Positions 24,221-55,600 are shown, numbered from the stretch's first letter. The stretch: 64,000 nucleotides of DNA from Lepidodermella squamata (GCA_047495785.1 JBLDXI010000004.1:1736001-1800000), one strand, 5' to 3'. Numbers and translations are program-made. The notes: generated by a model not told the origin, from the letters alone.

Positions 24221-27200
24221 TCAACAATATAACGTTGATCGACTTGCTCCCCGCGATGTCAGCAACTCAGCAACATCGGTTTTCTTATTGCAAATCGCGA
24301 TATTGACAGCTGTCTTAAAGCCAAATGCATTTCCAGCATCCTTATTTGCACCTCTATCCAGCAACAGTCGAACTACTTCGACTCTCCCATTCTGAGCCGC
24401 ATACATCAACGCCGTCCAGCCATCGTTATCCCTGGCCTCGATGGCAGCCCCGCGATCCAACAAAACTCGAGCTATTTCTAATTGCTCATTCGCAGCCGCA
24501 ACGATCAACGCCGTCCAGCCATCCTTATTCTGGTCGTCGATTGAAGCGTTGCGATCCCCCAACAGTCGAGCTACTTCGACTCTCCCATGCCAAGCAGCAA
24601 ACATCAACGCCGTCCAGCCATTGCCATTCTTCGCCTCGATGGAAGCGTTGCGATCAAGCAACAGCTGAACTACTTCGACATGCCCAAAATCAGCCGCAAA
24701 CATCAACGCAGTCCTGCCATCGTTATTCTTGCTCTCGATAGACGCGCTGCGATCAAGTAACAGTCGAGCTATTTCGACTTGCCCATACCTTGCAGCCAAC
24801 ATCAATGCCGTCTAGCCATCGTTATTTCTGGCTTCAATGGAAGCGTTGCGATGTAACAGCAGTCGAACTGCTTCGACTTGCCCATACATGGGCGCAATCA
24901 TCAACGCCGTGTTGCCATATTTATCCTTGGCCTCGATAGCCGCGTTGCGATCCAGTAATAGTCGAGCTATTTCGACTTGCCCATACTGAGCCGCAAGCAT
25001 CAACGCCGTCACGCCAGTGTTGGACTCGGCCTCGACGGCAACATTATGTTCTAGCAACAGTCGAACTACTTCTACCTTCCCCATCCGAGCCGCAATCATC
25101 AACGCCGTCCAGCCATTCTTATTCTGGTCGTCGATTGAAGCGTTGCGATCCAGCAAAAGTCGAGCTATTTCGACTTGCCCATTCCAAGCCGCATACTTCA
25201 ACGGCGTCCAGCCATAATCATCCTCCTTGACATTAACATTGGCTCCACGTTCAATGAAAAGCTGAACAATTTTCAGTCGCTGGTCTGATTGCGTCCGATT
25301 GCAGAATACACTGTGCAGTAGGGTGCCATTTGTGGCAATCCAACCACCACAGACAACCCTGGTTGGGTTGCGCCAGTTCGGGTCGAATTTGCCGCCTGTG
25401 GCTACGTCGATCTTCGCAACGAGCTGCCGCACCTGCGCCACGTCGCCCGTCTTGGCTGTCGCATTCCACAACTGCTCGTAAACTTCACGGATCTATATTA
25501 ATACGTAATAAAAAAAATAATGAGTTTATAGGATCGATTATTTGAGATTTAAGATGAAATTGAAGCTGAAGCTGAAACGGAGCATGATCCCGTTGATCGA
25601 CTAACTTGCCTAACGTCCTAACTTGCCTAACGTCCTAACTTGCCCTTTCGCGATATTCAAGCTTCGTCTTAATAATTATGATATTTCATCACAAAGTAGT
25701 TCTATCCAGGTATCTGTCTAGGTGAAAACTATACGTCACGTTTTTGTACGGCGACAATAGTGAAGGAAGATGGAATATATGCTAACAAGGGCCTGGTATA
25801 GACAGGATACGCCCATGTGAGGTGACTGCCCATTGAACGCCCAAAGAATTTTGTGAACACCTTGGTATTGGAAATATCTTGTTGAGCGATCATTTGTAAT
25901 CTATTAGTCTCAGAAGATCTTCTTTCTTCATCCTTATGACGTCCTTAGTGATCACGCTAACTTGCATTCTTCTCAACTGACTTCGTGTTCTTATAATCCC
26001 TCAAAAAGATGTTTCCATTACTAAAGTACTCAAGTGCGGGGAATTCAAAAATCAATATTAGAAGCTGAAGGTTGGCTATATTAGATCTAAAGGTTAGCTC
26101 GTCGTCAACAATAAGGAATCTTGATAGGATCTATGCAAGGATCTTTGTAAAAATTAGATATGGAACGTTTTTGTGTAAAGAGAAGAAAATGACACTTTAA
26201 CTGCCAAAAATGAACTGCGAGATCCGATAATTTTTGGATGCAAATATCGGATCTCGCAGTCCGTTTTTGGCAGTTAAAGTGATAATAAATTCGAGGATTG
26301 CTGTAGCCTAGTTGCATAGCGGCACATTTTTCAGGGGGAACACCAAGCTGCCAATCGCTAACCCAGGCAAAGATTATTTCGGGAGCGAGAGATAAACTAG
26401 AAGAAGAAAACAATGAATTATCGAAGGGAAATTTAATATATACTTTACAATCATCAGCTAATAGTCTGACTTTGACTCCGGCAGGAAGAATAGGGACTAA
26501 ATCGTTAATGTATATTAGAAGTAGTGAGGGGCCCAGGACAAAACTTTGGGGGACCCCACTAGTGACAGGCGTTGTAGAGCTAGAAGAATTATTAGCAACA
26601 ACATATGGCGTGCGATTAGAAAGGTAGGCAGCGATCAACTTTAAAATGTCACCGTCATGCTCAACGAGAGACGATTTGTTAAGAAGCTTGGAGGGATACA
26701 CAGAATCAAATGCCCTGGCATAGTCGATGTGAGCGATGTCAACAAATTCACCGCATTCAATAGCAAAGCACCAATCAGGGAACATTCGAGCATCTGAGAT
26801 TGCTGTGGGGTTGCGAGATCAGTGATTCGACTAGGGCTGAGTGCTAGGGGGTACGCAAAAAAGTGATTAAAAAATCGCGAACTTTGTTCGTTATCGAGAA
26901 AATTTCAAATGTTAACCATGCGGTGAAGCCAGGTTTTTTCATACAAAGAGCATGTAAGAGCAATGTAAGAGCGGGTAAATGGGCAAAATAAAGGCCGCAC
27001 TCAAATAAACGCCGTATTACAATAATTGCATAAAACATCCTGTTTGTGTTGAATATCAGTAATATTGAAATTTAACAAACCAGCGATGGTTGGTCGTTCG
27101 TTCCTGCTGAAGGGCTGCCTGGGCTTCGCGATGTCGCCACAGCTGTGAGGTTCACATCACCGGCTTCGGTATTATCTTGAGCAACAACAAGCCCGGATGC

Positions 27201-27242
27201 CAACCCAAGGAGAGCGATTACGATTGCTAAGTAGAGACGCAT
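24221..27242 (-). pseudogene. Secreted ankyrin-repeat protein copy 1 (~11 repeats) with an in-frame TAG
   Basis: Signal exon 27242-27081 (MRLYLAIVIALLGLASGLVVAQ..NDQPSL/gtttgt) joins the ankyrin exon 25492-24221 in phase 0 (atatag/ATC CGT GAA GTT). TAG at 24812-24814 replaces the usual Trp of GWTAL. Confidence 0.75.
26105..26785 (-). mobile_element. Degenerate non-LTR (CR1/L2/Jockey-group) reverse transcriptase fragment in intron 1 of ankyrin copy 1
   Basis: Motifs DYARAFDSV, SGVPQSFVLGPSLLLIYIND, LLADDCKVY, W..DWQL...PEKC. Confidence 0.8.
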
Positions 27243-30200: not shown

Positions 30201-30567
30201 GACTTTCAAGTGTAGGTGTTAACTTTTGTCGCCCTGTCAATTTTAGGAGTTCACCGCCAACTGTCAAAAGCCGCTATAGGCTGACGGTGGTAATTACACG
30301 CTGCAGTAGCCACATAGCAGTTGACATCGTGGAGAACAGTGCGGTTTTATGCATTTTCACGAAACTATCGTTGGGTGCAGGACGTAACGATTTTCAGGAA
30401 TGATTTTCTTGAACCCTAGATGCTGCTAAATCGACAGAGAACACTGATTCGTAATTGAGAGTGAATAAAGAGAATAAATAATTGTATTTTGCCCTTGGAT
30501 AACATTCGAGAAAAAGTAAATTTGTAATTTGTTGAATCAAAAATCCTTTTCCGTGATTCCGCTGGTT

Positions 30568-33500
30568 TCAACAATATAACGTTGATCGACTTGCTCCCCG
30601 CGATCTCAGCAACTCAGCAACATCGATTTTCCTATTGCAAATCGCGATATCGAGAGCTGTGATAAAGCGGGACACATTTCTATTTCTAGCATCCTTGTTT
30701 GCACCTCTATCCAGCAACAGTCGAACGACTTCGACTTGCCCATTCTGAGCTGGAAACATCAAGGCCGTCCAGCCATAGTTATCCTTGGCCTCGATGTCAG
30801 CCCCGCGATCCAACAACAGTCGAACGACTTCGATGTGCCCATTATCAGCCGCAATGATCAACGCCGTTTGGCCATTGTTATTCGTGGCGTCAACGGTAGC
30901 GTTGCTATCAAGCAACAGTCGAACTACTTCGACTGTCCCATTCTGAGCCGCCCATATCAACGCCGTCCAGCCATCGTAATCCTTGGCCTCGATGGCAGCA
31001 TTGCTATCAAGCAAGAGTCTAACTGCCTCAACTTGCCCATTCTGAGCCGCCAACATAAACGCCGTCGCGCCATCGATATTCTTAGCCTCGATAGCCGCGT
31101 TGCGATCTAGCAACAGTCGGGTTACTCCGATGCGCCCGAGCAGAGCCGCAATCATCAACGCCGTGTCGCCATTAATATCCTTGACCGCGATGTCAGCCCC
31201 GCGATCCAACAACAGTCGAACGACTTCGGCTTGCCCATTCGCAGCCGCAACGATCAACGCTGTTTGGCCATAGTTATTCTTGGCCTCGATAATAGCCCCT
31301 CGATCCAGCAACAGTCGAGTCACTTCGACTGTCCCATTCTGAGCTGCAAACATCAACGCCGCCCAGCCAATGTTGGACTTTGTCTCGATGGCCGCGTTGC
31401 GATCCAGCAACAGTCGAACCACTTCGGCTTGCCCATACGAAGCCGCAAATATCAACGCCGTGTTGCCATCGTTATTCTTGGCCTCGATAGCCGCGTTGCG
31501 ATCAAGTAACAGCCGAACCAAGTCGACATAACCATACTTTGCGGCCAACATCAACGCCGTCGTTTTATCTTTATCCTTGTCCTCGATGGCAGCCCCGCGA
31601 TCCAACAACAGTCGAGCTATTTCGACTGTTCCATAGTGAGCCGCAAATATCAACGCCGTCCAGCCATTGTTATTCTTCGCCCGGATGGCCGCGTTGCGAT
31701 CCAGCAACAGTTGAACTACGTTAAGATGCCCATGTACAGCTGCTATCATCAACGCCGTGTTGCCATATTTATCCTTCGCCTCGATGGCAGCCCCGCGATC
31801 CAGCAGCAGACGAGCTACTTCTACTGTTCCATTCTGAGCCGCTATCATGATCGCCGTATAGCCGTAGTTATGCCTGGCCTCAATAGCAGCCTTGCGATCC
31901 AACAACAGTCGAGCCACTTCGACTGTCCCATACTGAGCCGCCCACATCAACGCCGTCGCGCCAAGGCTATCCGTTGCCTCGATGGCAGCCTTGCGATCTA
32001 GCAAAACTCGACCTACTTCAACATTCCCAACGATAGCCGCAATCATTAACGCCGTCATGCCATCAATATCCTTGGCCTCGATGTTAGCTCGGCGATCCAG
32101 CAACAGTCGAGTAAGTTCGACTGTCCCATTCTTAGCCGCATACATTAACGCTGTCCAACCAATGTTGGACTTGGCCTCGATGACAGCCCCTCGATCCAAC
32201 AACAGTCGAGCCACTTCGACTTGCGCATAGCCTGACGCAATCATCAGCGCCGTCGCGCCATAGTTATTCTTGGCCTCGATGTTGGCTCGGCGATCCAGCA
32301 ACAGCCGAACTACTTCGACGCGCCCATACGAAGCCGCATATATCAACGCTGTCCAGCCATTCATGGTTTTTGCCTCTTTGTAAGCGTTGCGGTCCAACAA
32401 CAGTCGAACTGCTTCGGCTCGACCATACGAAGCTGCAAATATCAACGCAGTCCAGCCAGATTCATCCTTGGCCTCGATGGAAGCGTTGCGATCTAGAAAG
32501 AGTCGAACTGCCCCGACTTGCCCATACGAAGCCGCTCTCATCAACGCCGTCCAGCCAGATGAATCCTCGCTGTTATTCACATCAGCTCCACGTTCAATGA
32601 AAAGCTGAGCAATTTCCAGTCGCTGGTCTGATTGGCTCCGATCGCACAATACACTGTGCAGCAGGCTGCCATTTGACGTAGTCCAACCATCACAGTCAAT
32701 CTGCCTCGGGTTGCGCCAGTTCGGGTCGAATCCGCCACCTGTGGCTTCGTCGATCTTCGCAATGAGTTGTCTCACTAGCGCCACGTCGGCCGCCTGGGCT
32801 GTTGCATTCCACAACTGCTCGTAAACTTCAGGGATCTATATTATGTACAAAATATTGAGTTTATAGGATCGAATAATAGTAGAGATGAAATTGAAGCTGA
32901 AGCTGAAACGGAAGATAATCCTGTTGATCGCATAACTTGCCCAACGTTATAACTTGCCTTGTCGTGATATTCAAGCTTCCCCTAAATAATTATTTGGTGA
33001 CAGACACTTCACATAGCTCTCATCACGATAGCTCAAAAAACCCATGACCGCAATGATATTTCATGGACCGAGTATGCCTACTTTGAGGTCTAGTAACTCG
33101 AATTATACTCAAAAGCCGGTCGGTAAGTCGATAAGTCGGTGAGCGCTGCTTTGGCGTTTTTGACGCGTCACAACCGCCTAACAGTGCCCCCCCCCCCCCT
33201 TCCACCCCCCGCGGGCTTGAAATCTGTTGGGGTTATAGAACCGAGGGCGCTCTATTCGACTGTCATGGTGAGAGCCCGAAGGAAAGATTCCCTGGCATTG
33301 ATAATTGGCCGCAAAACACCCCTGAAAATACAGTACTTTTCAAGCCGTCGAGCCAAAAGATTCCCTGGCATTGAAAATGGGCCGCAAAGGCAGCCCAAAA
33401 TGCGAGCAATTGGCCGAGATAAGCCCATTTATTGCATTATATTTTGTGAAGTAGTGGGTGGCATAATTGATTGGCGGGCATGGTTGATTCAATAAGTAAA

Positions 33501-34363
33501 TCAGCAAGGGTGGTTCGATTCATTGCGGCCGCTCACTGTATTTTTTATTTTTTCCTGATATTTTGGACCGTATTTGCTGCTTCTACTGTAGAAATTAGCA
33601 CTACGGAAAAATTCCCCTTGCATTTTGAAATTTGAATTTCTCGTCGTTTCTGTTCGCAGCCGTTTTACTCGGGGAATACCAAATGTGCAATTGAAGAGAA
33701 TACATGGCGTATAAGTGGCACGCGGAAGTGCCGGATTTTCCCAGTTGGAAATTTCTCGGCGCCCTAGGCAATATTCATTTTCGGGGGCCCCTATACCTAG
33801 TTTTTAGTTTTTTGGTTGCTTTCTTGCATTGAATTGCTCTATTGCTCAGATCACTGTCGGTTGGTTTCATAACGGAACATTGTTTGCCTAATGGAAAATA
33901 CGGCACTGGCACGCGGCCATCTGCAGTGGATTTGCGAGATCGGCGAGCCCACTAGGGCTGCGTGCTGGGGGGTACGCAAAAAATTATTAAAAAAAATTTC
34001 GCTCGCAAACTTTGTTCGTTATTTGAAATTTTGACCATTGGCGAAGCCATATTTTGCCATACAAAGAGCATGTAAGAGCGAGGTAAGAGCTCTGACAAAA
34101 TAATGGACAAAATAAAGGCCGCCCTCAAATAAACGCCGAATTCCAATGATGGCATGAAACATCCTGTTTGTATTGAATATCAGTAATATTTAATATAAAC
34201 AAACCAGCGATGGTTGGTCGTTCGTTCCTGCTGAAGGGCTGCCTGGGCTTTGCGATGTCGCCACAGCTGTGAGGTCCAGATCACCGCCATCGGTATTTTC
34301 TTGAGCAACAACCAGTCCGGATGCCAGCCCAAGGAAAGCGATTACGATTAAGTAGAGACGCAT
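30568..34363 (-). CDS. Secreted ankyrin-repeat protein copy 2 (~21 repeats, ~800 aa), apparently intact
   Basis: Signal exon 34363-34205 (MRLYLIVIAFLGLASGLVVAQENTDGGD..NDQPSL/gtttgt) joins a single long ankyrin exon 32835-30568 in phase 0. A possible 24-nt phase-0 micro-exon with a GC donor lies near 32960-32982. Repeats are 33-aa G.TAL..AA..G..EVVRLLLDR.A.IEAKD units. Confidence 0.85.
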
Positions 34364-35142
34364 TTTGAAAATTAATCAAGAAAACTATCTACTAAGAATT
34401 TTCTCTTTCTCGTGTGTAACGTGCTACGTGTTTTTTTTCGTTCAAGTATTTTTATTATATATTAAGTTTCAAGTCGTGTTTTTCTCCTTTTGTAATATTG
34501 ATGAGTAATGCATGAGTAATAAATTATTCAGATCCTCTGTTTACAAATTCCCACTCATACATTAAAACATCCTGTTTAGGATCAGTCGTTTCATTGCCTT
34601 GACGGTGGCGAGTATATTCAATCGCGATTGCGAAGAGGAGCGAAACAACCTCTCCTTGTAAGATGTATGGTAGCCTTTGAGTTTTTAGGCGAAGAAACGA
34701 TCAACGCCGATCAACAAGAAAATGAACGACAAAAGCACGAGGATTTCCCCAAGGCATTGCACTCTCCATCCGCTTGGCGTGAACAAAATTTACTTCACGC
34801 CCGGCGAATTGGGTACACCGGAGTGAATATTATTTTATCATTTTCCGTTCTCACTAGACTTTCAGGGGGGGGGGGGGATGGGGGGTATCATCTCAGAAAG
34901 ATGGCACCATGGAGAACAAATTAAATAGTCATTTTTTTCTCTGTGGATGGCACCAACGGCAAAGCTGTTATCATCACAACATAGAAAGTAGCCTAGCTAA
35001 GAATCGGTGATCTTACCTCCATGTAAATCAGTAACTTGGCTACACATCAAGTAATTGAGTAACAGTTTACATACTCAACTCTTTCTCATCTCCACATCGC
35101 GTAACTGAGGGAGTTTTTATATCGTAATCGCTGCCCGAAGTT

Positions 35143-35884
35143 TAGATTTTCGTTCACAGACGCGCGCACTTCGGCCAGCACGGCCGAAGTTTGAACAATA
35201 GGCGGTGCGCGCACACCGAACAAAGGACGCGCACAAACTTCGGTTTCAAGGACAAGTGCCTCCGAACCGAAGTTTGCGCGCTTCCGAAGTTATTACGCAC
35301 GCACGCAACCACGCGCGCGCGCACACAGCCAATTGACCACACTGTACCAGGCGCCTCAAATTTGTCTTTCCGGTGATATTTTCATTGACAATGCAATCCG
35401 TTTCAATAGTGATAAGCAATAGTGATAAGCATTTAGAAACTGAGAAATTAATATACTTAGCAAAAATGTCCGGTTTCTGTGACGAATTTTTAAATATTAT
35501 AGAAATAGCGCGGCGCGTATGGAAAGCGGTTTTGATAAGAATGCGCAAGAATATTTTAGTAATTGTTTTTAAAAGCGAATATGGTGAACTGAGCGTTGGA
35601 ATTTAGCTTCTTTTTATCCTCATCAGAAGGCGCGTCTCATTATGAAAAATATTTTGAGAATTAGGGTGAAATGGAAAAAAAATAGTATTGACCCTGAGCA
35701 GGAGCCATACCCGCACGTGGTTTGTGAGCGCGCGGCCAAACTTCGGTCGCGGACAATAGAAACTTCGTGCGTCACGCTTCGCGCGCACGTAGAAAATGCC
35801 ACTGATAAGGCCTCCGAAGTTTTCCGAAGTTTCTACTTCGATCTCCGAAGCGGTAGGTCTCCGAAGTAGTTTGTGAACGCACTA
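35143..35884. mobile_element. Probable non-autonomous DNA transposon
   Basis: Inverted ends around CGTTCACA(G/A)AC / GTTTGTGAACG with many subterminal CCGAAG/CTTCGG motifs; boundaries approximate. Confidence 0.45.
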
Positions 35885-37174: not shown

Positions 37175-37640
37175 TCACTTCAATGAGCCCTCCGCATAGA
37201 GCCAGCCTAATATCGATATTTGGTGGACACCTACTATTGATCGAAGCCATCGATACTCTATTGTATTTAGTCTATTTTCTTGGACTATCGAGATGTTCCA
37301 GGATTCACAGGCGTAAATGATGGTAGGTATTATCACGCAAGTTAGGACCTTCAATTTTGTTGATATGGAAACCTGATTTTTATTGCACATAAACTTATTC
37401 ATAGCCCCGAATACACTACCAGCCTTAGAAATCCTATAATTTAGTTCCTCGTCAATTTTGCCATTGCTGGTGATAATACTGCCTAAATATTTGAATTTGG
37501 TAACTTTTTCAAGTTTGTTACCATTTAGTTCTAATTCGTATTTGCAGGTTCCTTCCTCGTCCTTAGCGATAATCATATATTGGGTTTTAGCAACGTTAAT
37601 TTTAAGTCCTAATTCGGTGCATGCTAAGTCAAATTAGGTC
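37175..37640 (-). mobile_element. RTE-type LINE fragment (C-terminal part of RT region)
   Basis: LEKVTKFKYLGSIITSNGKIDEELNYRISKAGSVF..KLKVLTCVIIPTIIYACESW. Confidence 0.8.
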
Positions 37641-40718: not shown

Positions 40719-43148
40719 ATGTCGAGAAAACGCCATGTTTTTGAAGATATTCTCGATTCGCCGCGACACTGCTCGAAAATTGAGCGATTGTACGACAATA
40801 TTCTCGACTCACCGAAGCCCGCCGGCGACACGGCCCTGTTCGCCAATATTCTCGACTCGGCTAATGGCGAATTTGAAAACTCGCCTTTTCATGGCATTCT
40901 AGCAGAGCCGTCGTTTGTTATGTCGCTCTTGTATGAAGATATTCTAGATAAATACGACTGTGAGGTAATTTATTCAATTCATTTTTTATTGAATTTCTCA
41001 GATTCATTAAAAAAATTTATATGATTTGATTAATTTTTAAAAATTAAAAAAAAAATTATATGATTTGATTAATTTTTAAAAATTAAAAAAAAAATTATAT
41101 GATTTGATTAATTTTTAAAAATTAAAAAAAAAATTATATGATTTGATTAATTTTTAAAAATTAAAAAAAAAATTATATGATTTGATTAATTTTTAAAAAT
41201 TAAAAAATTTAACTTAATTTTTTAAATTATATTTTAAATTTATTTAAATTTATTTAAATTTTTGATTAATTTTTCAATTTAATTTTTTTAGTCATTACAC
41301 TTCTACCTTTCCGACGACCTATCGCTCGATCCTGTTGAAGTAAGCAAGTCGAAATCATTGAAGGCTGGCCGCCGTGCGATTGAAGTTGACCAGCCCGGCA
41401 TTATCGATTGCATTCTAAATCTTGTTGAGCGCAAGCACGCCATGGTCGCCGCGAATAAGCGTCACGGTGATGATGCTGCAGCTGGTGTTACGCTCGATGA
41501 ATGCGTTGAAGAGTGTCAGCTGAACGGTTTTAAGTGCAGCCGCTCTTCAGTTTATCGACTGTTTCCGGCTTCTAACAAGAAACACAAGAATTCTGCGAAG
41601 ACGCATCGCGCTGTCATTGGTTTGAAGTTACGGCCCAAGCGCTGCGATCTGCGAAAAGGCGATGAAAAACTCGATCATCATCGGAATGCGCGCATGACGT
41701 ACCTCGACGAGTTGATGCTGCAGTTTCCTGATGACTTCACCTTTTTTAGCTGCGATAACAAAAACTCGATCGTCGTTGGTGACACGTGCGTGACCAAGTT
41801 GTGCCAAAACAAGTACTACTACTTCGAAGGTGAACAGCCGAATTTGCCCGACCACAACTTTCCGGCTGATAAACACCTGAAAATTGTCCCCGCCGGCTAC
41901 GAAAGACGCGAGCAGCCGTACGTGAGCGATTCTGGCCGCGTCAAGTGGCGCAACGCGGAGGTCGTCGTCGTAAACCGGTGCCGGCTTTTCAACGAGTGCG
42001 GCATAGCTGATCACGTGAGTGACCTCGCCACTCATGCCCTGAAAAATTCGCCCCGCGGCGGCGCACCATGCTTCGTTCTCGTCGTCGACGCCGGGCCCGA
42101 CTGGCGGATCGAATATCCTAATGTGCGGTATATGTATTGGCGCTTGTTTTGCGAACTCGGCCTCGAGGCGATGATCGTCGCGCATTACGCTCCAGGTTAC
42201 AGTTTTCGAAATAAGGTAAATAATATTGGTCACAAATAAAATCTCAGGAATTTTCTAAAATTTAATAAACTTTTAAAATTTATTGAATAAACAAAATAAA
42301 ATAATTTATGTTCATGTTTTATTAGATTGAACGTCGATGGTCGAAGAGCAATCGGCTTTTAGTTGGCCACACTACGTCTCATCCGGACAAATGGCTGGAT
42401 CAATATCCTCTGGCAAAGGACAAGCCGGTACGCGAACGATCACCGCCGAGTGCGCGCTCAAACTCGTGACTGAGCTCATCAATGGGAAACCGGCGGAGAA
42501 AGGCGTGCTCTTCTACTGCGTGGCTGAGCGCGCCGCGGCCGACCCGCGGTTCGTCATCACCCCCGCGGAGCACGACTTCATCAACACCGCGAAGCCGAAC
42601 GCGGTGGCTGTCGAGCAAAATCAGGACTTGTACGAAGACCTGATTCTCATGGAAAAGCACATCGACCTGTAAGCCTTTTTTCTTTCATTAATTTATTTTC
42701 AAATTTTGAAGCTGAAATTAATTTTGATTTTTTATTCAAAAAAAAATTCAAAAAAACTGAATGCTAAAATTAAATTATTATTTTTTTTCAATTTCAGCCG
42801 CTGCGGCCAGGTCTGTTTTACTCGGTGCGAGGATTCAGCCTGCGTACATTGCGGACAGCATCCGCCGCCCGCCTTCGGCCTGTGGAAGTACACGGCGTCC
42901 CCGACCCCGAGTACGACGATTCTCGGCCGGGTCAATACAAGAAATTCGCCGATGTGTTTGAAGCCCGGCAACGCAGCGCTGCTGTTGAGGCAACGAATCC
43001 GCGGCCGCCGGCTGGTCGTTGCGAAATTTGCCCATCATATAGCTTTTTCAGCGAGATCCACAAAACCAGGCACACTAATATGATGCATCCCGAAATTTTG
43101 AAAAAGGAAATAAAAAATGTCGGAAAGATTGATAATATGCGAGTTTAG
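40719..43148 (+). CDS. Zator (TP36-like) DDE transposase, 4 exons, with apparent frameshifts near 42435 and 42930
   Basis: Motifs SRSSVYR, FFSCDNKNSIVVG, LPDHNF, VVDAGPD, APGYSFRNK/IERRWS (joined across the intron at 42216), C-terminal CEDSACVHC and C2H2 CEIC..H..MMH. Confidence 0.8.
41017..41208. repeat. Tandem repeat, ~5 x 39 bp, >90% AT, in transposase intron 1
   Basis: TTATATGATTTGATTAATTTTTAAAAATTAAAAAAAAAA starting at 41017, 41056, 41095, 41134, 41173. Confidence 0.9.
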
Positions 43149-45202: not shown

Positions 45203-45320
45203 ACAAGCAAGCTGCTTTATTCTTTGAATTATTTAATAAAGCACCGGCCACGGGTGAGCTTTGGGCGCACACATCAAAGTGCCACTTCGCGCGTGATTAC
45301 AAGTAATGATAATTGTAGAT

Positions 45321-45355
<35 letters not shown>

Positions 45356-48336
45356 TTTTATTTGGTTGTACTGTGTCAATAATAACAATGCCTTTAAGAC
45401 GCAGTGGTATATATTTCTTAATTTTAGTTGGATAATATTTTGATTAATGGTTGGATTGATTGTTAGCGTATAGATGATGATTTAGGATTCTAATTCCATC
45501 TTTTAGAACTTGAAGGGCGATTTCCACTGATTTGCTGCTGCTGATGCCGTAATCCTGAAGTAGTTTTACCGCTTCTTTTGTCAGTGAGCCACGGGCGCCA
45601 ATGTAGAGGCCGCGTACTTCGACCGAGTCCAGGTCGAAAGCTTCACAAATAAAGTTACTGCACGGTTCATATATTGAACGCTTTTCCAGATCTACAGCTG
45701 TAAATTGGTCTTCAGTTGACTCGAATCTAATCGTCGGGTCGATAATTAATCCATGTCTACTTCCCTTTTGGACTGCTAAAAGGGTCGAATCGTCGCGTTG
45801 AACCATTGTTGGCGATGCAATGTCCTTCCTCAGTCACTTTGAGGCCTTGGCTACGTAATTCAGCCGCAGTCTAGAAGTAATCAGCAACGAGTTGAAGGGG
45901 CAAGCGCGGAGGACGAGGGGAAGGGTTTCAATCTCAGCGCCGCATCTGCGACACTGGGTACCGTCCTGACTGACACCTGGCCCACCTCTCACCGGAGCCG
46001 TATTCGTTGACATCTTAATTGCCATTGTCCATTCTGCTACACTCAAGCCATTCCTTCGCAGAACCCAGTTGTTTGTTTTAGGCACACATTTAAACTGAGA
46101 CACTCCTTTTCCTTTCTGTTCCAGGCTGCACCAAAATTGGAATTCTCGTTCTCTCAAATTGCTGCGTATAGCTTTTACGTGTGGCGGAAGGTTCTTCTCT
46201 GCCTCATGTCCATCATTTTCATCCAACTCTTCTTCAAGATTGAATTCGAGGTTTTCGTCCGAGGCTAAGTCGATATCAATTTTGGCAAGGCATTCCTCCA
46301 TTTCACCTTCCAGGTCCCTACAAGCCATCACAAGCGGTTCGCCATGGATGAGAAGCTTCCTGCAGATGTTATATATTTGTAAATACGCTTCCCAAGATGC
46401 TTTTGTTAGACCAAGACCACGGTGTTTTCGTGGTGCGTATAAGAAGCTCGATGGCGTACTGGTAGGAAGACCAATGAATTCTTTAACAACACTTCGTAGG
46501 ATCACATCAACGGAATCAAGGAAGGTCTTCCTTATAGCTTTGACTGGGGCCGTTTGAAAGGGATAGATAAGCTTTGGCCAGATAAATTGCGTTAGAATTG
46601 TTAGTTTTTGGTCCGCAAGCAAAACATTCGATTTCGCGAGTAGTTCCAATTGCTCCTTCAATTCTGAAATGACAGCTCCTTCATCGAAAATAATCTCGTC
46701 GTTAAAGGTTACTCCTAAGTATCTAATGGATTCATCCTCTTTGATAGCCGGAATCAAATCACCGTTGTTCAAGACCAAGGGTTCAGGATTAAGCTTTCCA
46801 TTTTCGACAATAATTGCCACGCATTTCTTCACATTTACTTCGAGTCCAATCTGTACAAATAGGTTTCTTGCAATTTCGACAAGCGTGGCAGCTGATTCGC
46901 GGCTGTTCCCAACAGGCGTAGTGTCGTCAGCGAAACCAAGAACAGAAACATTCGGAAGATCTGAGGAGAGTTTGAAACCATACTCTTCAGCTACTTCCCG
47001 CTCAGATAGCTCACGTAGAACGAAATCAATGCAAAGATTAAATAGAGTTGGTGAGATAGGTGAACCTTGCATAACTCCGCGTTCAAACGAGATTAGAGAA
47101 GTTTTAAGGCCATTTGCTTCAATTTGTGTAGAGTTATTAATTACTAGCTCCATTAGCATAAAGCGAAGGTCACTCGGGATGGGCAGATATTCCAATGTTT
47201 TCCGTATATGTTCGAAACCAACGTTATCGAAGGCTTTGGCTAAATCCAAGAAGGTCACAACGCAAGTAGATTTGTCTGCTTTGGCTTTTCTAAGACACCC
47301 AGAGACAATCGAAGCATTTATATGGGTGCCTGGGCACGAAGTGAATCCACGCTGATTCGATGAGAAGCATACGTACTCTCTAAGCCGGCGGTCCAGCATT
47401 CGTTCGAACACACGTCTCACGAGGGATGTTATTGTTATTGGGCGCCAGTTGTTCGGGTCATTGAGGTCGCCTGATTTATCAATAAGCACAGTTCTCGCAA
47501 TCCGCAGGCTGCTCGGAAGAAATCGGCGTTTCAACATGAAATTGTAAATCAAGACGAGTACATCAAGGCAACCCTCTGCATGAATAACTCTCATGAGTGT
47601 TCTATCCGGTCCAGGAGACGTGTCAAGGGCAATTCCAGCAGCTGCTGCCTTGATCTCACCTACGTTGGTGTCTAATTCGAAACTCGAGTCAATATTTTTC
47701 TGATCACTATCTGATATTGGACTTCCATAGGACGGTCTTGTTGCGTCAGCTATCAGTAATAGATAAACTAACCAATCAGCGCGCCCTCTAGTCCGCATCA
47801 TTCGTTTCTGACATACATGGCGTATTATAATTGAATCAGGATAAGCATAGTGCAAACGTGGGAATGGACATGTCGGGACCGTCTCGTGCAGTGCAATTAT
47901 CAACTTCTTACCCACGAAGAAACAGACAAGAATCATAGTGATACGCCGTTTAAAAGCAAATTTTCGCGGGGTAGAATATTCTTGATTGCGTTGGATATAG
48001 TCCTTTTTGCAGCGAAGTCTTACAGAGGATTTCCATCGGGTCAGGACTTGTTCGAGATAAGCAACTAACGCAATCGTGACAGTAAGTGAGGCAAAGAGCC
48101 AGATTTCAGGTTTCAAAAACGAGTAAAAGGCGGTGAAAGCGTCGAAGAATGCGAAGTATCCCCATGATTTTGATTATAGTTTTATATTAGTTTTATATTA
48201 TATATTAGTTATAGTTAATAATTATCGAGGTGTTACGTTGTTTCGATAATAGCGACAGGTGGATACACAGTAGATTTTAGCGTTGTACGATAGAGATGAG
48301 CTAAGGATATTATTCTAGATCTGGTTTCACTGCCGA
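45203..48336 (-). mobile_element. 5'-truncated RLE-type (R2-group) non-LTR retrotransposon insertion
   Basis: RT motifs SPGPD, WRPITI, QRGF, FLDLAKAFDNV, GVMQGSPISPTLFN, FADD, YLGV. Zinc knuckle CRRC..ETL...C, then restriction-like endonuclease IIDPTIRFE..EKRSIY in a frameshifted ORF (45444-45806). TSD CCACTGGTTTCA at 45191-45202 and 48337-48348. Confidence 0.85.
45322..45350. repeat. (AG)n microsatellite in the retroelement 3' region
   Basis: ~14 AG units. Confidence 0.95.
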
Positions 48337-48568
48337 CCACTGGTTTCAGCAAAATGGCGTGTATCGACTTGCTCCCCGCGATCTCAGCAAATCAGCAACA
48401 TCGGTTTTCTTATTGCAAATCGCGATATCAAGAGCTGTGTTAAAGCCAAATAAACTTTGAGCATCCTTATTTGCACCTCTATCCAGCAGCAGTCGAGCTA
48501 CTTCGATTGTCCCCTTATAAGCCGAATACATCAACGCCGACCATCCATCGTTATCCTTGGCCTCGATG

Positions 48569-51500
48569 AGTGGCGCCGAAAAAAATGAATTTGCCGAAAA
48601 GGCAACAATAAAAAATTCCAAACCCGCCTTTACCTTTTCGAGATAACGTAGTAAAACACCCCCCTTGGTCTGCTTTTTTTCAACCTGCTTTTTTTCAACC
48701 TGAAAGAAAGCAGCTTTAAGGGCATCGGGACCACTGGTCTCTAGATGGGTCCACTGGGCCCAAGCCCTTGGGAATAATTTCCCCAAATAAACGGGCCGAA
48801 GCACTGGAACCTTGACTTGGTGGCTGCCCCAGCAAACTTTGTGGGATACTCCGAGCCATCAGTTGCCTAATACCAGTGCATCTACCGGTTAGACTACCGG
48901 TTTGGGAAAACTTACTGACTCCCATTGTATCCTGCTACGCTACCTAGTAATGCGTGGTGTGCTACCCCAGCCCTCACTACCGGTGCCAGATGTCTGTGTG
49001 CTTGTCGTATAGGGCTCAGATGAGATTGCTTGTAGCGGGAACACCCACTACACCCAGTACGGGTTCTCCGGACTGGCTCCCCAAAAAAAAACCCCCTTGA
49101 ACAGCATCTAAGCAACTGTAAGGCCCACGTCCTCGAGCTTGGTGTCATTCGATAGCCCGTCATTTCAATATGCCAGCAAACCTTTTTCAGCCAGTTCGGG
49201 TGATTTTCCTATTTTTAGTGAATTTTTGAATGATTTTGTCGAAGTTGTTGTTGTTGTCGATCGATTGCAAAAAATCGATAACCGATAACGAAATATAGGA
49301 GGATAGAGGTAGGCGCTTAAAAAATGAGGCTTGAGAAAAAAACGCTGCCCTAACCTTGCCCTCCCCCATGTGGTGGGGGAGGGCTTCAAAGCTCCAATGC
49401 TTTTGATGACGTCAGGATGCGTCGTCGAACTTATTCAGCTTCAGCGATCGCAGTGTCTTACGACGCGACAGTCTACAACAGGTCATATTATGTTAGGTGC
49501 CAAGATTGTTCTTGGGCGTTGATAGCTCTGCACGGCTCAATAATATAGGTATACATTGTTCATTCAAAAAACTGTCCATGTTCTGAAGTTTTCAATGTAC
49601 AAAGGAAACTCAATACACGCGTCCCAAGCTGCAGCTTCTCCAATTAAAAAATACCCGTGCACCCTCAAAACGACTGCTATTCCACTTCATTCACCATAGC
49701 GTAATGTTTTCAGGTCAGCAGGACGTGCGCAGTTTAGGAAAGGCCCCCAACTTTGTTAATTGAAAAATTGCGGAAATCCAAGCGCGAGGTAGTCACAGCT
49801 CTTATTTACCCCTCAAACTGCCTATAAGTGGGCCGTACTTGTCACTTTCCCGCGGTACTATGAGAATAGCTTTTCCTGACTTTTCCTCTCATTTGTGTGC
49901 TCGCTTGTCAAAAAATCGTCAAGTTCGTTATAAAGCATCTGATGTGACATCATCGCCTAGAAGCAAAATGGACGACTGACGAATTCGTCAAAACGTGCTT
50001 TTTTACTAAATGTGACGTTAACACTTAACGCATGCTTCATCAAAAATAAGCTATTAGGGCAAAGCTTTAAATGGCTTAGAACCACATAATTACAAGCTCC
50101 CTTTGTCTGATTTAAGTCATTTCCCAAAGCCGTACACTATTTCAAGCGATAAGAAACACTACCAGTGGGTTATATCAGCAGAAATGTCGGAATCAGGGTC
50201 AGTTTCAGCGGAAAATTCGACTTCAGAACAGCTCTACGTTGATTATGATTTTTTGGCGGCAAGGCGCTTGAGAACATTTTCGACTTTGAATGAAACGAAA
50301 TTACCGTATTTCTCGAATATTTACCACGGGCTATACTATTTATGAGTGAATGATTTTTTATTCGGGTTGTATTAATGAGTGGGATATAGTATACGGATGT
50401 ACTATTTAATTGCGAATAATCACAAAAAGCCGTGAGCAATTCATATCAAGACGACGTGTTTGGATTATTTTATTTGTCGATTCATTGAAAAAGTGAAAAA
50501 GTTAAGTTTGGCCTACAAACAAAAACAATCATCATTGCAATCATTGCGATAGCGATTGCGAAAATCAGGGATTAGGGTCATGCGTTATTAATGCGTTATT
50601 AAGGCATTCAATTTTTTTCAACGCGTGCATCGCTACAAGTAAAGTAGCTGCGTGTCAATTTCGAGGCTAGGGTTAATTATGAACTAATGATTTTTTCGTC
50701 GGGTTGTCTTAGGTAGCGCGGATACATCGTTAACAGCGGCCAAAACAACCACAAAGATGACTCATTCAATCGTACTTCTAGCCACATAGCGTAATGGTGA
50801 AGTACGTTAGGCTTTTTGAGCACCGATTTTTTCATCTATCGAACGAACTTTCCTCATAAAATCTGTAAATAGTAAAGTGGTTGTTTTTGCGCGTCGCAAA
50901 CGATATACTTTCTAGAAATACGGTATTTACTATTTCGATACCACCAGCTCGGAAACCAGCGGCAACGTTGCTAGCACAAAATTGAGTGAGGCCACTAAAG
51001 AGGTGTTTCAATAAGCTGCTTCAGGAAGACCGGAACATTTTTCAGATCTGTCAAGCCCCTGAATCTATTGCGCCGCATTACCGCTCACCAGCCCTCTTTA
51101 GATGGAACATGATAGATCAATTAAATGGAGCATGTCCGTTAAGCCAGGTGGAAATCGAATTAGCTCGCTCGGTGTTTTGCTCCACAACTAACTCACAAAC
51201 CTCATACGTCAGGTGAGATCCGTGACCATCCCAAAGGACAAAACCCTCATCCTTGACTTAATACTTGGAGACTTGGGGTTTTGACCCGCACCCCGGACCC
51301 AGGTCGGTGAAGCTGCCGGGACTCGAAAAAAGTCGACGTTTTCTATGCAGATTTAGGCTGCGATAAAGGTTAAGATGGTTAAGATGTGAAACTATCCATC
51401 CTCTAATGTTGTCAAAATCTCGCGGTGCAAAGGTCAACATCTGCAAAGTAAACAAAAACGCGTGCCTAGACCAAAGCATTTAATAAGGTCATTTTTCTCT

Positions 51501-52682
51501 CATTTCTACGAAAATTGTCTCGTCCAAAATGAATGAAAATGATACGCCTGTAATATTTCCTGACTTTCAAATGAATCTAAGCTCATCGCGCGCCAAAATA
51601 GAGAAGACGCGCTATTGTTAGACAAAAGCGGTCGGAAACTTTTGAAATTGAAATTGTTTGACATTTGCCGGGACGGTAAATTTCAAAATTAGAAAAATTA
51701 TAAATAAATTTAGGTGCGCCTAATTCGCCAGCAGAGTTCCAAATGTTCTCACTATCTAACTGGCCTAAGCTCCGATATTTCTCCTGATTTTTTTCCGTTT
51801 TGGCATCATAGGTTTCCCAAAACCATGTCCATAGGACTCGTGCGAACCTTCAGGTTTCCCACGGGCTTCAAAATGACAAAATGACAAAAATAGATCCCCA
51901 CTAAGAAACGAGGCATTTTTGGATCATTTTCAGACCCAAAATTGAAGGAAAATTGTCAGTTTCGCTCGCGAGTGGCCTACTTACGAAGACGTTTAATGAC
52001 AGCCTCACTGATTAAGGGACGGTAATGTATACAATTAATTTTTTTAAACTGATCCATGATTTATGTCTCCTGCTATTTATTCAATCCACCTTTATTTTGG
52101 TTTGTGTTTTGTGAATAAAACATTTTTTTTGAATAAAAATTCGACTTAAGACATTCTCAGTCAGTTGATCAAGGTCCACGGCTTACGATGGTCTCAAAAC
52201 TAGAGCGGCATTCACAAAATGTATGTGCGTAGTGCTTTCATACAAAATGCACCCAAATTTGGAAATGGTATAAGGGCAGCAGTCAACTCGGATTCTGAAT
52301 GCTCCACGGTTAACAAGTGCTATGAAGTACTTTTAGGTCAGGTTATGCCATTGAATACTCGGGTTTAGACTGTATTCGGTGGTGAAATTATCCGACCTAA
52401 GGAGTGTTGGCTGTAGCTTGCAATGACCTCCTTAACAAGCCTAAGGCCGGATTGTTCGGCGATGTCAGCGAAATCTATTTGCTTCAGCGTATTTTGCAAT
52501 CAACTCGAATAACTCGTATTCGTATAGACGGATCTATTTGTTCACTGAGGGCACTGAATGGGAGGGGGCCGAAACACCCCTCCCTTTGGGAGGGGCTTAC
52601 GGGGTGGGATGGCATGCTGCGCAGTGGACTCTAACAACTAAACTATAGAACCGAAAAAAGCTGCTCGCTCTTCGGTATGCTG
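48569..52682. mobile_element. Unclassified 4.1-kb insertion with 4-bp TSD (GATG)
   Basis: Clean interruption of an ankyrin repeat; only weak end similarity (AGTGGCGCCGAA.. / ..TTCGGTATGCTG); GC-rich hairpins at ~49357-49385 and ~52560-52600; no transposase ORF. Confidence 0.7.
50304..50923. mobile_element. TA-flanked MITE nested in the 4.1-kb insertion
   Basis: TIR CCGTATTTCT(C/A)GAA / TTCTAGAAATACGG with TA flanks; same terminal style as 1078-1508. Confidence 0.65.
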
Positions 52683-55600
52683 GATGGAAGCCCCCCGATC
52701 CAACAACAGTCGAACTACTTCAACATTCCCATTCGCAGCCGCCAAGATCAACGCCGTCCTACCATCGTTATTCTTGGCCTCGATGGCGGCGTTGCGATCC
52801 AACAACAGTCGAGCCACTTCCCCTTGCCCATACTGAGCCGCATACATTAAAGCCGTCGTGCCATTTTTGGACTTGGTCTTGATGGCAGCGTTACGATATA
52901 GCAAAAATAAAGCAACTTCATCTCGCCCATTTGCAGCTGCTATCATCAATGCTGTCAAGCCATTGTAGTTCTTTGCTTCAATGGCAGCGTTGCGATCCAA
53001 CAACAGTCGCACTACTACGATGTGCCCATTCGCAGCCGCACTAATCAACGCCGTCCAGCCATCGTTATCCCTGGCATCGATGGCAGCGTGGCGATCTAGC
53101 AACAGTAAAGCAACTTGATTTCGCCCATGTGCAGCTGCTATCATCAATGCGGTCGTGCCATCGTTGTTCCTAGCCTCGATTGACGCGTTGCGATCAAGCA
53201 TCAGTCGAGCCAATTCGACGGTCCCATTCTGAGCCGAATACATCAACGCTGTCCAACCACCGTTATCCCTGGCCTCGATGGCAGCCCCCCGATCCAACAA
53301 CAGTCGAGCCAATTCGACGGTCCCATTATAAGCCGAATACATCAACGCCGTCCAACCACCGTTATCCTTGGCCCCGATGGCAGCGTGGCGATCTAGCAAA
53401 AGTCGAGCTGCTTCAACTTGCCCATACCAAGCTGCTCTCATCAACACCGTCACGCCCTGTACAGTTTTAGCTTCAATGGCAGCCCCGCAATCCAACAACA
53501 GTCGAACCACTTCGACTCGCCCATACTCAGCCGCAATCATCAACGCCGTCCTGCCAGTGATGGACTTGGCCTCGATAGCGGCTTTCCGATCAAGCAGCAA
53601 GTGTACCGTTTCGACACGCCCTTTCATTGCCGCATAAATCAACGCCGTCCAGCCATAGTTTTCCCTGGCCTCGATTGCAGCGTTACGATCCAGCAGCAGT
53701 AAAGCAACTTCATTTCGCCCATTTGCAGCTGGGATCATCAATGCCGTCACGCCCTCTACACCTTTAGCTTCAATGGCAGCCCCGCGATCCAGCAACAGTT
53801 GAGCCACTTCGAATTGCCCATACGCAGCCGCAACGATCAACGCCGTATGGCCTTGGTTATTCTTTGCTTCAATGGCAGCGTTGCGATCCAGCAACAGTCG
53901 AGCTACTTCGACTTGCCCATTCTGAGCCGCAAAAATCAAAGCCGTCCAGCCATAGTTATACTCCCTGACATTCACATTAGCTCCACGTTCAATGAAAAGC
54001 TGAGCGATTTGCAGTCCCTGGTCTGGCCGTGTCCGATTGCAGAATACACTGTGCAGTAGGGTGCCATTTGTGACAATCCAACCACCACAGTCAATCTTCT
54101 TTGGGTTGCGCCAGTTCGGGTCGAATTTGCCACCTGTGGCTTCGTCGATCTCCGCAACGAGTTGCCGCACCTGCACCACGTCGCCCGTCTTGGCTGTTGC
54201 ATTCCACAACTGCTCGTAAACTTCACGAATCTATATGTCATAAACAAAAATTGAGTTTCCAGGATCGAATATTTGAGATGAAATTGAAGCTGAAGCTGAA
54301 ACGGAGGATGATCCTTTTGATCGCCTACCTCTTGGCTTGCCCTTTCGCGATATTTAAGTTTCCCCTAAAATAATTATGATTTTTCATCACCAAGTAGTTC
54401 TATCCAGGGCCGGGGCATCGGCTTCCTCAGAAATTTTAATCAATATCTTGCTCAGACTGTTGATGGTAATCATCGCAAACAAGCATTTCTTCTCTAATCA
54501 AGCTATCAAGTAATTTCACGGAAACATGTAAGAGGATGTAAGAGCAATGTAAGAGCGGGTAAGTGAGCAAAATAAAGGCCGCACTAAAATGAAAGCCGCA
54601 TTCGAACACAAATAAACGCCGCAGAAAACATCCTGTTTGTGTTGAATATCAGTAATATTGAATTTAAACAAACCAGCCATGAGTAGTCGTTCGGTCCTGC
54701 TGGATCCACAGCTGTGGGGTTCACATAATCGCCTTCAGTTTTACCTTGAGCAACAACTAGTCCGGATGCCAGCCCAAGGAAAGCGATTACGATTGCTAAG
54801 TTGAGACGCATTTTGAAAATTAAAGAAGAAAACTGAGCTTTCAACTAATAATTTTGATGAGTAATGCATGAGTAATAAATTATTCAGATTCTTTGTTTAC
54901 AAATTCCCACTCATACATAAAAAACATCCTGTTAGGGGATCAGTTGTTTCATTGCCTCGACGGAGGCGATTATACTCAATCGTGATTGCGAAGAGGAGTG
55001 CAATAACCTCTCATATGATGTAAGTTGTAAGGTAGCTGTTGAGTTTCGAGGCGAAGAAACGGTGGCCAGCGGTCAACCCCGATCAACAAGGAAGTGAACG
55101 ACAAAATCACGAGGGTTTCCCCACAGCATCCCTGTCCTTGTCATTGCAACCAGCGTTTATCTCCAATTTACACCGTTTTCAGCCGCTGCGTTGTCGCAGT
55201 GAAATTTCGGAGAATATTATTGAGCGCAGGTGGGGCCTAAGGCTCATCAATAGTCCAAATAGTAAGAATCTGCTGTTCATTGTTTTACAAAAAGTATTCA
55301 TTGCTGTTATGGTAGATTTGACATTTTAACGCTGTACTATATTTGTTAGCTATGTTTCAGTATTTTGCTTACATTTTGCTTGGTAATTATACGATAATAA
55401 CTGAGATACAGCTGCTAACAGAGGCTAGATCAGAGATTTATCCAGCCATCCCCTACCCATCCCCTGGACATCCCCTCAAATCAAGCGGTCATCCCCTAAA
55501 TTTTAGAGACAGTAATAGTATTGTGCGATTCATGACTGATCCCGTAGGGCCGGCAGCCTTAATAGAACTTACCGCAGTCTATAAATTTAGCAGGGTTGCA

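Follow-up and report, generated by a model that had tools for sequence, protein, structure and literature searches.

Predicted secretion of ankyrin-repeat proteins by means of a separate signal-peptide exon in a gene family of Lepidodermella squamata

Ankyrin (ANK) repeats are the textbook intracellular protein-binding scaffold. Three neighbouring genes, designated here A, B and C and located in a 64,000-nucleotide stretch of the Lepidodermella squamata genome (the window, i.e. the whole DNA analyzed), raise the question whether such a fold may also be exported: their long ANK exons lack a start codon, and each is preceded on the same strand by a small exon resembling the beginning of a secretory protein. 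In this work we have analyzed the organization, wider family, transcript-like coverage and predicted fold of these genes; they point to a normally intracellular binding fold that is predicted to be secreted through the joining of a separate signal-peptide exon to a long ANK exon.

All three genes are encoded on the minus strand. The first-pass annotation had placed the signal exons at 27242-27081 (A), 34363-34205 (B) and 54811-54674 (C), and these coordinates proved exact: the exons (162, 159 and 138 nt, respectively, all multiples of 3) start with ATG and end in phase 0 directly before GTTTGT. It had also described start-less ANK exons behind a conserved acceptor, which is true for all three genes. 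The ANK exons begin at 25492, 32835 and 54230, immediately 3′ of ATATAG, are in frame without an ATG and are each preceded by an acceptor of the pyrimidine-tract/AG type. Only Ank families were recognized in them by Pfam (E down to 1e-155), and the number of 33-residue repeats varies, from ~10 in A to ~21 in B and at least 14 in C.

Gene B is the only one of the three that is intact in the window. Its exon 1 (34205..34363) encodes the initiating methionine and the predicted signal peptide MRLYLIVIAFLGLASGLVVA, with Q directly after the putative cleavage site, and a 32-residue linker. The conserved region directly upstream (34364..34470), a putative promoter with a TATA-like motif and a short 5′ UTR, is 96% identical to its counterpart in gene A. 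The intron (32836..34204, 1369 nt) has a conserved 5′ block of ~130 nt and a 3′ block of ~190 nt, and its middle is composed of repeats, including a high-copy element at ~33240-33406. Exon 2 (30568..32835) consists of 755 codons and a stop and encodes an N-terminal cap (N-cap), ~21 ANK repeats and a C-terminal cap (C-cap), matching Pfam Ank_2 with E=1.2e-155 and 507 bits. The protein terminates with a cysteine (...STLYC), and a KDEL-type tail is absent.

The three-copy ankyrin family of the first-pass annotation is real, but the damage to two of its members had been overlooked. Gene A has an exon 1 (27081..27242, signal peptide and linker) with 94% DNA identity to that of gene B, an intron (25493..27080) containing a reverse-transcriptase fragment at 26105-26785, and an exon 2 (24221..25492) of 423 codons, in which both caps are present and the frame is interrupted once, by a stop at 24812-24814; its two ANK halves score 156 and 179 bits with Ank_2. 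In gene C, exon 1 (54674..54811) encodes a signal peptide and a linker shorter than in the other copies, and the intron (54231..54673) has 443 nt, which is probably close to the ancestral length for the subfamily. The ANK exon of this gene (Ank_2, 367 bits) is split: the 5′ part (52689..54230) comprises the N-cap and ~13 repeats before the homology breaks off mid-repeat, whereas the 3′ part (48346..48567), recognized by a Pfam Ank match and by family D1, supplies the last repeat, the C-cap, the terminal cysteine and the stop. Between them lie ~4.1 kb of transposon sequence, made up of nested repeated elements (48568..52688) whose copies on contigs C33, C42, C13, C19 and C26 are 93-98% identical. 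No tRNA was found in a search of the region for a tRNA-derived SINE. In both A and C the damage is of recent origin.

Comparison of the window copies with each other gives 80-90% identity at the intron ends and 86-92% in the N-caps, with an omega of 0.5-0.8 and with introns conserved as much as exons. The copies are too similar for their mutual conservation alone to prove function, and it is the wider family that supplies the proof. A genome-wide count, in which all family sizes are lower bounds, gave at least 131 homologous exons for the N-cap and, for the signal peptide, at least 68 exons homologous to exon 1 of gene B. For 54 of the 68 signal exons the same strand carries an N-cap no more than 8 kb downstream, compared with ~0.3 expected by chance. 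Across the 23 paralogues inspected, exon 1 identity ranges from 41 to 87% and the pattern of this exon is preserved: ATG, 14-17 uncharged hydrophobic residues, (V/A)xAQ(D/E), ...WL and an invariant GT, 3′ of which the bases vary. None of the 23 has lost the GT donor or the acceptor codon, even at ~40% identity, and the start of the ANK exon falls at the identical codon position, after a pyrimidine tract and AG. Despite lacking an ATG, the N-cap evolves under purifying selection (omega ~0.48). Two further intact short-form members, near-identical relatives with open frames of 587 codons, are present on contig C64. COX1 is absent from the assembly.

The relatives also indicate where exon 1 may have come from. 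Trypsin (PF00089) and Sushi (PF00084) exons are found between the signal and ANK exons in 19 of 20 other paralogues fetched, the lone exception being a near copy of gene C. Such exons are absent from the introns of genes A, B and C and of paralogue L071, and no protease or CCP remnants were detected in the window introns at E<0.01. Paralogue L068 (G000:C4:320000-323300), with the order signal peptide/trypsin-like/CCP/ANK, has a signal exon homologous to gene B exon 1 (41-67% identity for such genes). Genes of this type share with the window genes the donor phase, the acceptor codon, the N-cap and C-cap, the four cysteines and the terminal cysteine; they differ in carrying three protease exons and a CCP region, both missing from the window genes, and in having 4-8 repeats in comparison with ~21 in gene B. 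Because trypsin-like and CCP exons are so regularly present in the paralogues, exon 1 can be regarded as the first exon of a secreted-protease gene. Judged from these comparisons of sequence, exon 1 of the window genes is a remnant of such an exon, a point that the first-pass annotation had not noticed, and these genes represent a derived short form, apparently left after the loss of the protease and CCP exons. Since all junctions are in phase 0, a direct junction of exon 1 with the ANK exon is possible. In the window genes the ECG cysteine of exon 1 is gone and its PW motif is mostly gone; the drift is confined to the former protease part, and the signal part is intact in all copies.

Transcript-like coverage came from a run, X1, which is RNA-like and guessed to be RNA. 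Contigs of X1 match gene B exon 2 with 0 mismatches at a depth of 11-17 per contig. The depth is 9.31 on exon 1 and ~0 on the intron and flanks, and falls to 0 at 34390 and across 34409-34742, upstream of the gene. Bin arithmetic (2.06 x 167 / 9.31 = 37 nt, i.e. 34205-34241) places the boundary at a single position: X1 coverage ends at the predicted donor, 34205. The first 45 bases of the intron are conserved among paralogues, yet lie outside this coverage. Both exons of gene B thus appear to be transcribed, without the intron. No read or contig spanning 34205 to 32835 is present among the X1 matches displayed, and a search of the genome itself with a degenerate pattern for a retrocopy of the spliced exon 1/exon 2 gave no match. 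A micro-exon proposed earlier at 32960-32982 found no support and was rejected: its 23 nt are not a multiple of 3, which puts it out of frame between phase-0 junctions, it needs a non-GT donor, and its X1 depth is ~0.7.

It could be argued that the two exons are not productively joined, the signal exon being a decayed protease relic and the ANK exons being pseudogenes or served by another leader, with no protein or a cytosolic one as the outcome. The missing junction among the displayed X1 matches, the disruption of genes A and C, the weak constraint among window copies and the loss of the protease-type cysteine and PW motif would all fit. We consider this improbable, given that gene B retains its 755-codon open frame, that X1 depth on exon 1 is similar to that on exon 2 and stops at the donor, that the signal part of exon 1 has been spared in every copy, that the C64 members are intact as well, and that no alternative conserved coding element occurs upstream. 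Splicing of the signal exon onto the ANK exon, as the first-pass annotation had proposed, is supported by the conservation of splice sites and phase, the genome-wide pairing, the purifying selection on the N-cap and the RNA-like coverage.

The signal peptide was judged by inspection and hydropathy. The N-terminus of the gene B product has Sec-type features: M-R, 17 hydrophobic residues (mean Kyte-Doolittle 2.2) and then V-V-A before Q. Residues 1-21 are the only segment hydrophobic enough for a membrane span or a signal, the next-best 19-residue window (1.69) lying within an ANK helix with N, Q, E and R among its residues. The same segment might instead stay uncleaved as a signal anchor and make a type II membrane protein that presents the ANK array at the cell surface. 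The length of its hydrophobic core, Arg2 in front and the acidic residues behind, which favour an N-in, C-out orientation, would suit such a protein, but VVAQ(D/E) is near-invariant right after the core, as expected for a signal-peptidase site, and in the protease-bearing paralogues the same exon is an ordinary zymogen leader; a signal anchor is therefore, in our opinion, very improbable.

Further indications of the secretory pathway are given by the cysteines and glycosylation sequons. The confinement of cysteines to the caps, noticed at first in the window, turned out to be a family-wide pattern: 19 of 27 complete ANK exons have two per cap, at positions 48 and 64/65 and at L-22 and L (L being the last residue), and ~150 repeats have none. 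The C-cap pair is jointly lost in L032 and relocated in L057 and L079. Ten N-glycosylation sequons are present in gene B, and WN(A/V)T, NG(S/T), CN(R/Q)T and NKT are conserved. In sister genes the same ANK exon stands downstream of trypsin and sushi modules, and no membrane span separates it from them. The earlier secretory reading, with its sequons and lack of a transmembrane segment apart from the leader, is upheld by these observations; together, the cap cysteines, the sequons and the sister genes support the predicted routing of the products via the secretory pathway.

The AF2 model of the gene B product has ~22 helix pairs throughout, at a moderate mean pLDDT of 71.8 and with a weak C-terminus. 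Its best structural match is the 24 repeats of AnkB (4rlv; E=2e-19, TM 0.55, ~29% identity); AnkB, ankyrin-1 and DARPins are the top PDB matches, and alpha-latrotoxin (9goa_A) is among the fold matches. The membrane-binding domain of canonical ankyrins (AnkB/AnkR, 24 repeats) resembles gene B in repeat number, whereas these proteins work as adaptors in the cytosol, contain ZU5, UPA and death domains and have no signal peptide, cap cysteines or sequon conservation. Entropy along the repeat peaks at positions 4, 5, 7, 12, 15, 16 and 18 (in DARPin numbering 2, 3, 5, 10, 13, 14 and 16). Pooled omega is 1.72 at the hypervariable positions and 0.43 in the framework; an omega above 1 on the binding face is suggestive, the site classes having been picked post hoc and the aligned repeats perhaps not being orthologous. 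With DARPins and consensus ANK proteins the window proteins have in common special N- and C-capping repeats, a near-invariant framework, a variable repeat number and variability concentrated at positions 2, 3, 5, 13 and 14. They differ from them in being natural and germline-encoded, in having a signal peptide, cap cysteines and sequons, and in that variability extends to positions 10 and 16 and is lower at position 33.

The explanation that we favour, and hold to be reasonably probable, is a two-exon gene for a secreted, disulfide-capped, glycosylated and soluble extracellular ANK binder derived from protease/CCP/ANK genes. Translation would start in exon 1, which would also encode a cleavable Sec-type signal peptide (with the cut predicted between A and Q of VVAQ) and a short, probably disordered linker, and would be spliced in phase 0 onto the one large exon for N-cap, ANK repeats and C-cap. 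The product would enter the ER, where a disulfide probably closes each cap (Cys101-Cys117 and Cys786-Cys808 in gene B, spliced numbering) and the conserved sequons are probably glycosylated, and would leave the cell to act as a soluble extracellular binder. Specificity for targets may reside in the seven hypervariable positions per repeat, which lie on the canonical ANK binding face. Such genes would descend from the signal peptide/trypsin-like protease/CCP/ANK genes abundant in the genome, having shed their protease and CCP exons. From the data presented above we infer the exact junction, the cleavage of the signal peptide, the disulfides, glycosylation, secretion and ligand binding.

The same gene model allows another destination: the protein might be packed in granules, glands or venom-like organelles and delivered as an effector into cells of prey, host or symbiont. 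ANK domains normally act in the cytosol, and large tandem arrays whose leader is conserved and whose mature part diversifies, with surface sites at an omega above 1, fit effectors too. Secreted ANK effectors with signal peptides, expanded in a lineage-specific manner, are known in oomycetes, including Phytophthora (PMC11139960), and the Toxoplasma rhoptry protein RON9 combines a signal peptide, ANK repeats and a sushi domain with a C-terminal membrane span (PMC3299665). These proteins resemble those of the window in the joining of a signal peptide to ANK repeats, and RON9 also in its sushi domain, but they are protist proteins thought to act on or in host cells. Conserved pairs of cap cysteines and sequons are in keeping with residence in an oxidising compartment, fusion with an S1 protease and CCP is closer to humoral cascades than to translocated effectors, and a translocation motif is not evident; we regard delivery into cells as rather unlikely.

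The family is peculiar to the lineage, as the first-pass annotation had supposed, its N-cap being without close relatives among 1.84 billion representative proteins. A phmmer search of these with the 82-aa N-cap yielded five weak generic ANK hits only, over short stretches (best E=1.9e-9), and no homology to oomycete effectors or RON9 beyond the generic ANK repeat. Nothing scored in a word-indexed search with residues 1-95 of the 755-aa product against proteins of 415-1320 aa, the ESM Atlas offered generic ANK clusters only, and a phrase search of the literature found no animal family of secreted ANK proteins. Latrotoxins resemble the window proteins as long ANK arrays released by an animal, but have a large N-terminal helical or pore-forming part where gene B has only its linker before the N-cap. 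Latrotoxins are not known to have a classical signal peptide.

A parallel may be offered by secreted solenoids of another fold. Variable lymphocyte receptors (VLRs) and other extracellular LRR proteins have cysteine-bearing caps at both ends, differ in their number of repeats and bind through a hypervariable face. By this analogy the ANK family of at least 130 members could form a germline-encoded extracellular recognition repertoire, a kind of "ankyrin antibody", in which capped hypervariable arrays bind non-self, most of them coupled to a serine protease and CCP as a complement-like cascade and the short forms of the window serving as free binders or regulators; we put this forward as a tentative and rather doubtful proposal. 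VLRs have the LRR fold and a diversity assembled somatically, whereas here the fold is ANK and diversity would come from tandem germline paralogues. Automated annotation would miss such genes or label their products cytosolic, because the signal peptide is on a separate small exon. Engineered ankyrins (DARPins) serve as antibody substitutes; if an animal family of this size does send capped, cysteine-stapled and glycosylated ANK arrays along the secretory pathway, with diversifying positions on the binding face and often in fusion with protease and CCP modules, evolution would have arrived at the same antibody-like use of the ANK fold, and invertebrates would possess a humoral system for recognition or effector action of a new kind.

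The window carries three ankyrin (ANK) reading frames, all on the minus strand, in which Pfam detects Ank families only (E down to 1e-155). As the first-pass annotation had stated, none of them has an ATG at its start and each is directly preceded by ...ATATAG; they open with I(P/R)EVYEQLWNAT at 25492, 32835 and 54230 in the genes designated here A, B and C, respectively. The signal-peptide exons proposed for them proved exact in their coordinates, 27081-27242 (A), 34205-34363 (B) and 54674-54811 (C): these small exons lie 1.59, 1.37 and 0.44 kb upstream of the ANK frames, start with ATG and adjoin GTTTGT, and with lengths of 162, 159 and 138 nt they all end in phase 0. The product of exon 1 comprises M-R, 17 uncharged hydrophobic residues, VVA|Q(D/E/G) and a linker of 25-33 residues rich in Pro, Ser, Thr and Gly. 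The predicted spliced product of gene B has 808 residues, four cysteines (101, 117, 786 and 808), ten N-x-S/T sequons and a sole strongly hydrophobic stretch, residues 1-21, which agrees with the earlier view that a TM segment is absent.

The similarity of the window copies noted previously is real, but it does not prove function by itself, since A, B and C are 80-90% identical at the intron ends, close to the 86-92% of their N-cap DNA (pairwise omega 0.5-0.8), the N-cap and C-cap being the capping segments at the two ends of the ANK array. It is the comparison with the genome-wide family that settles the matter. In the 121 Mb genome the 82-residue N-cap query has at least 131 matches, and all those listed begin at query residues 1-4, i.e. 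at the acceptor; a profile search with exon 1 matched 68 signal exons. When the two lists were compared by manual count, 54 of these 68 were followed downstream by an N-cap within 8 kb on the same strand, while random placement would give about 0.3. Splice anatomy was inspected in 20 fetched pairs and the three window genes, and all 23 show ATG, a hydrophobic core, (V/A)xAQ and ...WL directly before GT. The bases beyond GT differ (GTTTGT, GTTCGT, GTATGT, GTCTGT), as expected if the invariant GT serves as splice donor rather than being read as a codon, and the ANK exon begins in every inspected gene at the identical codon behind a pyrimidine tract and AG. As exon 1 of these paralogues can be as little as 41% identical to that of gene B, the splice anatomy has been retained and is not merely recent. 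Pooled omega is about 0.48 for the caps, which carry no start codon themselves. About 75 of the 131 or more N-cap exons lack a signal exon of this type upstream in the lists and may use other leaders.

Only gene B is a candidate working gene among the three copies, given a stop in gene A and a repeat-element split in gene C. Exon 2 of gene B (30568-32835, minus strand) is intact, with 755 codons and about 21 repeats. Exon 2 of gene A retains both complete caps but has an in-frame stop (24812-24814) at a hypervariable repeat position. In gene C the ANK homology ends at about 52689; the final repeat and the C-cap follow from 48567 on, and nested repeated elements occupy the intervening 4.1 kb. 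This segment (48700-52650) is a composite of at least two elements, and the 93-98% identity of their copies on other contigs (C33, C42, C13, C19 and C26) indicates transposons with recent activity, and one of these split gene C. Just downstream of the gene C C-cap fragment lies a non-LTR-type reverse-transcriptase ORF of 760 aa (45834-48116, minus strand; RVT_1, E=2e-32). The gene A intron is enlarged by a 226-aa reverse-transcriptase fragment (26105-26785) on the same strand as the gene, and that of gene B by high-copy repeats; the gene C intron (443 nt) is probably near the ancestral size. The high-copy segment of the gene B intron (33150-33410; depth about 7900 in sequencing run X2, against about 100-400 nearby) is probably a SINE-like repeat; ARAGORN detected no tRNA in this region, and a run of about 13 G lies beside it at about 33190-33215. 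The spacer between genes B and C includes a 293-aa ORF (41358-42239, plus strand) with no Pfam match.

Two sequencing runs were aligned on the gene B region. X2 is evidently genomic DNA, as it gives coverage in every bin, and X1, labelled 'RNA?', behaves like RNA. X1 contigs match gene B exon 2 with zero mismatches at depths of 11-17, and depth is zero in the flanks and across most of the intron. Part of exon 1 is covered at depth 9.31; from the mean depth of 2.06 in the bin 34075-34241 the covered length is 2.06 x 167 / 9.31 = 37 nt, so that coverage starts from 34205, the final base of exon 1 ahead of the predicted donor. The first 45 intron bases after the donor are almost identical among paralogues, hence the alignment of a genomic or unspliced molecule would have run on past this point. 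One contig ends at 32828, 7 nt within exon 2, at the point of paralogue divergence. This pattern gives good indirect support to the proposed splicing of exon 1 to exon 2 in gene B. Non-productive splicing or pseudogenes, for which the damage to genes A and C might speak, appear improbable beside this coverage and the intact frame of gene B. X2 also shows 3-nt insertions (TGC/GCC) at 34348-34349, within the signal-peptide h-region of gene B; these correspond to the extra Ala codon separating gene A from gene B, and represent either cross-mapped paralogue contigs or in-frame length polymorphism.

Twenty paralogous loci, L068 among them, served to trace the origin of exon 1. Nineteen of them have, between the signal and ANK exons, three trypsin-like protease exons and a CCP/sushi region. 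L068 (G000:C4:320000-323300, plus strand) has, in order, frames with ...WLITAAHC... and ...GDSGGP..., sushi and the ANK exon, and Pfam confirmed both Trypsin and Sushi. It and 18 further loci (within L061-L080) encode a signal peptide, a trypsin-like protease, at least two CCP modules and 4-8 ANK repeats in an array; the N-terminus of the protease has GPGS where the activation site would usually have IVGG. Aligned by eye, the 3' half of exon 1 (ECG...PGSQPAGxxE(F/Y)PWL) seems to resemble the leader plus N-terminal part of a protease of this kind. In exon 1 of the window-type genes drift has affected the protease-type Cys and most of the PW motif and spared the signal part, and no traces of protease or CCP exons were found in A, B, C or the near copy that gene C has on contig C64. 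The simplest history is that the short form arose by deletion of internal exons from a signal peptide/protease/CCP/ANK gene, after which the phase-0 junctions would allow exon 1 to be joined directly to the ANK exon. Two intact short-form members, with frames of 587 codons, reside on C64. A third architecture (L017 and L028; G000:C36:561023-579563 and C42:230620-242091) has a shorter signal exon matching profile positions 1-26 only, then CCP-like sequence and an N-cap 1-3 kb downstream, apparently with no protease.

Cysteines are almost confined to the caps, as proposed: 19 of 27 complete ANK exons have exactly four, at 48, 64/65, L-22 and L, the final residue being Cys, and about 150 ANK repeats contain none. 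When the C-cap Cys at L-22 is absent, either its presumed partner is gone as well, as in L032, or a different Cys occurs nearby, as in L057 and L079, a pattern consistent with an intra-cap disulfide. The sequons likewise bear out the first-pass annotation, with four conserved in the caps, WN(A/V)T, NG(S/T)LLH, CN(R/Q)T and NKT. The ANK exon of the sister genes sits behind disulfide-rich extracellular modules (S1 protease, CCP), and the gap of about 180 nt between CCP and ANK exons in L068 leaves little room for a membrane-span exon. Taken together, the cap cysteines, the conserved sequons and this fusion are economically explained by an ANK domain that resides in the lumen or outside the cell. 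That the hydrophobic stretch of exon 1, which is followed by (V/A)xAQ in all inspected genes, is a type II signal anchor is very improbable.

An AF2 model of the exon 2 product from a single sequence (mean pLDDT 71.8) is an unbroken stack of helix pairs with a C-terminus of low confidence, in which Cys48 lies on a small beta-hairpin adjoining the helix that has Cys64 at its end. In the PDB the model best matches the 24-repeat AnkB domain, ankyrin-1, DARPins and latrotoxin. Across 147 repeats, entropy per position is very low at framework sites (G6, T8, L10, A13, A14, G17, L24-26, D27, R28 and A30) and high at positions 4, 5, 7, 12, 15, 16 and 18, which often hold W, Y, R, N or D. These high-entropy positions correspond to DARPin positions 2, 3, 5, 10, 13, 14 and 16, on the binding face made by the beta-turn and first helix. 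By the Nei-Gojobori method, pooled omega for 182 paralogue pairs is 1.72 at the variable sites, against 0.43 for the framework and 0.48 for the caps, values suggestive of diversifying selection at the hypervariable positions, with site classes picked from the same data, pairs that are not independent and aligned repeats that may not be orthologous. The product is best read, with moderate confidence, as a predicted secreted, cap-stapled, glycosylated soluble binder. The same gene model would serve an effector that is delivered into foreign cells, as are secreted ANK effectors of oomycetes (PMC11139960), or a protein kept in secretory organelles, as Toxoplasma RON9 is (PMC3299665); this is a distinctly weaker possibility, and non-productive splicing or pseudogenes and the signal anchor are less likely than either.

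As far as public proteins go the family is lineage-specific, as had been suggested, since neither 1.84 billion representative proteins nor a word-indexed protein search yielded a relative of the N-cap. The literature searched, which did not cover all journals, describes secreted ANK proteins only from oomycetes, apicomplexans and bacteria, plus latrotoxin, and no animal secreted-ANK family of such kind. There is nothing unusual in the ANK fold itself, unlike the predicted compartment, the cysteine caps, the split signal exon and the protease/CCP-fusion ancestry. To this family the window contributes the derived short form, evidence for a recycled protease-gene first exon as its leader, and RNA-like coverage.
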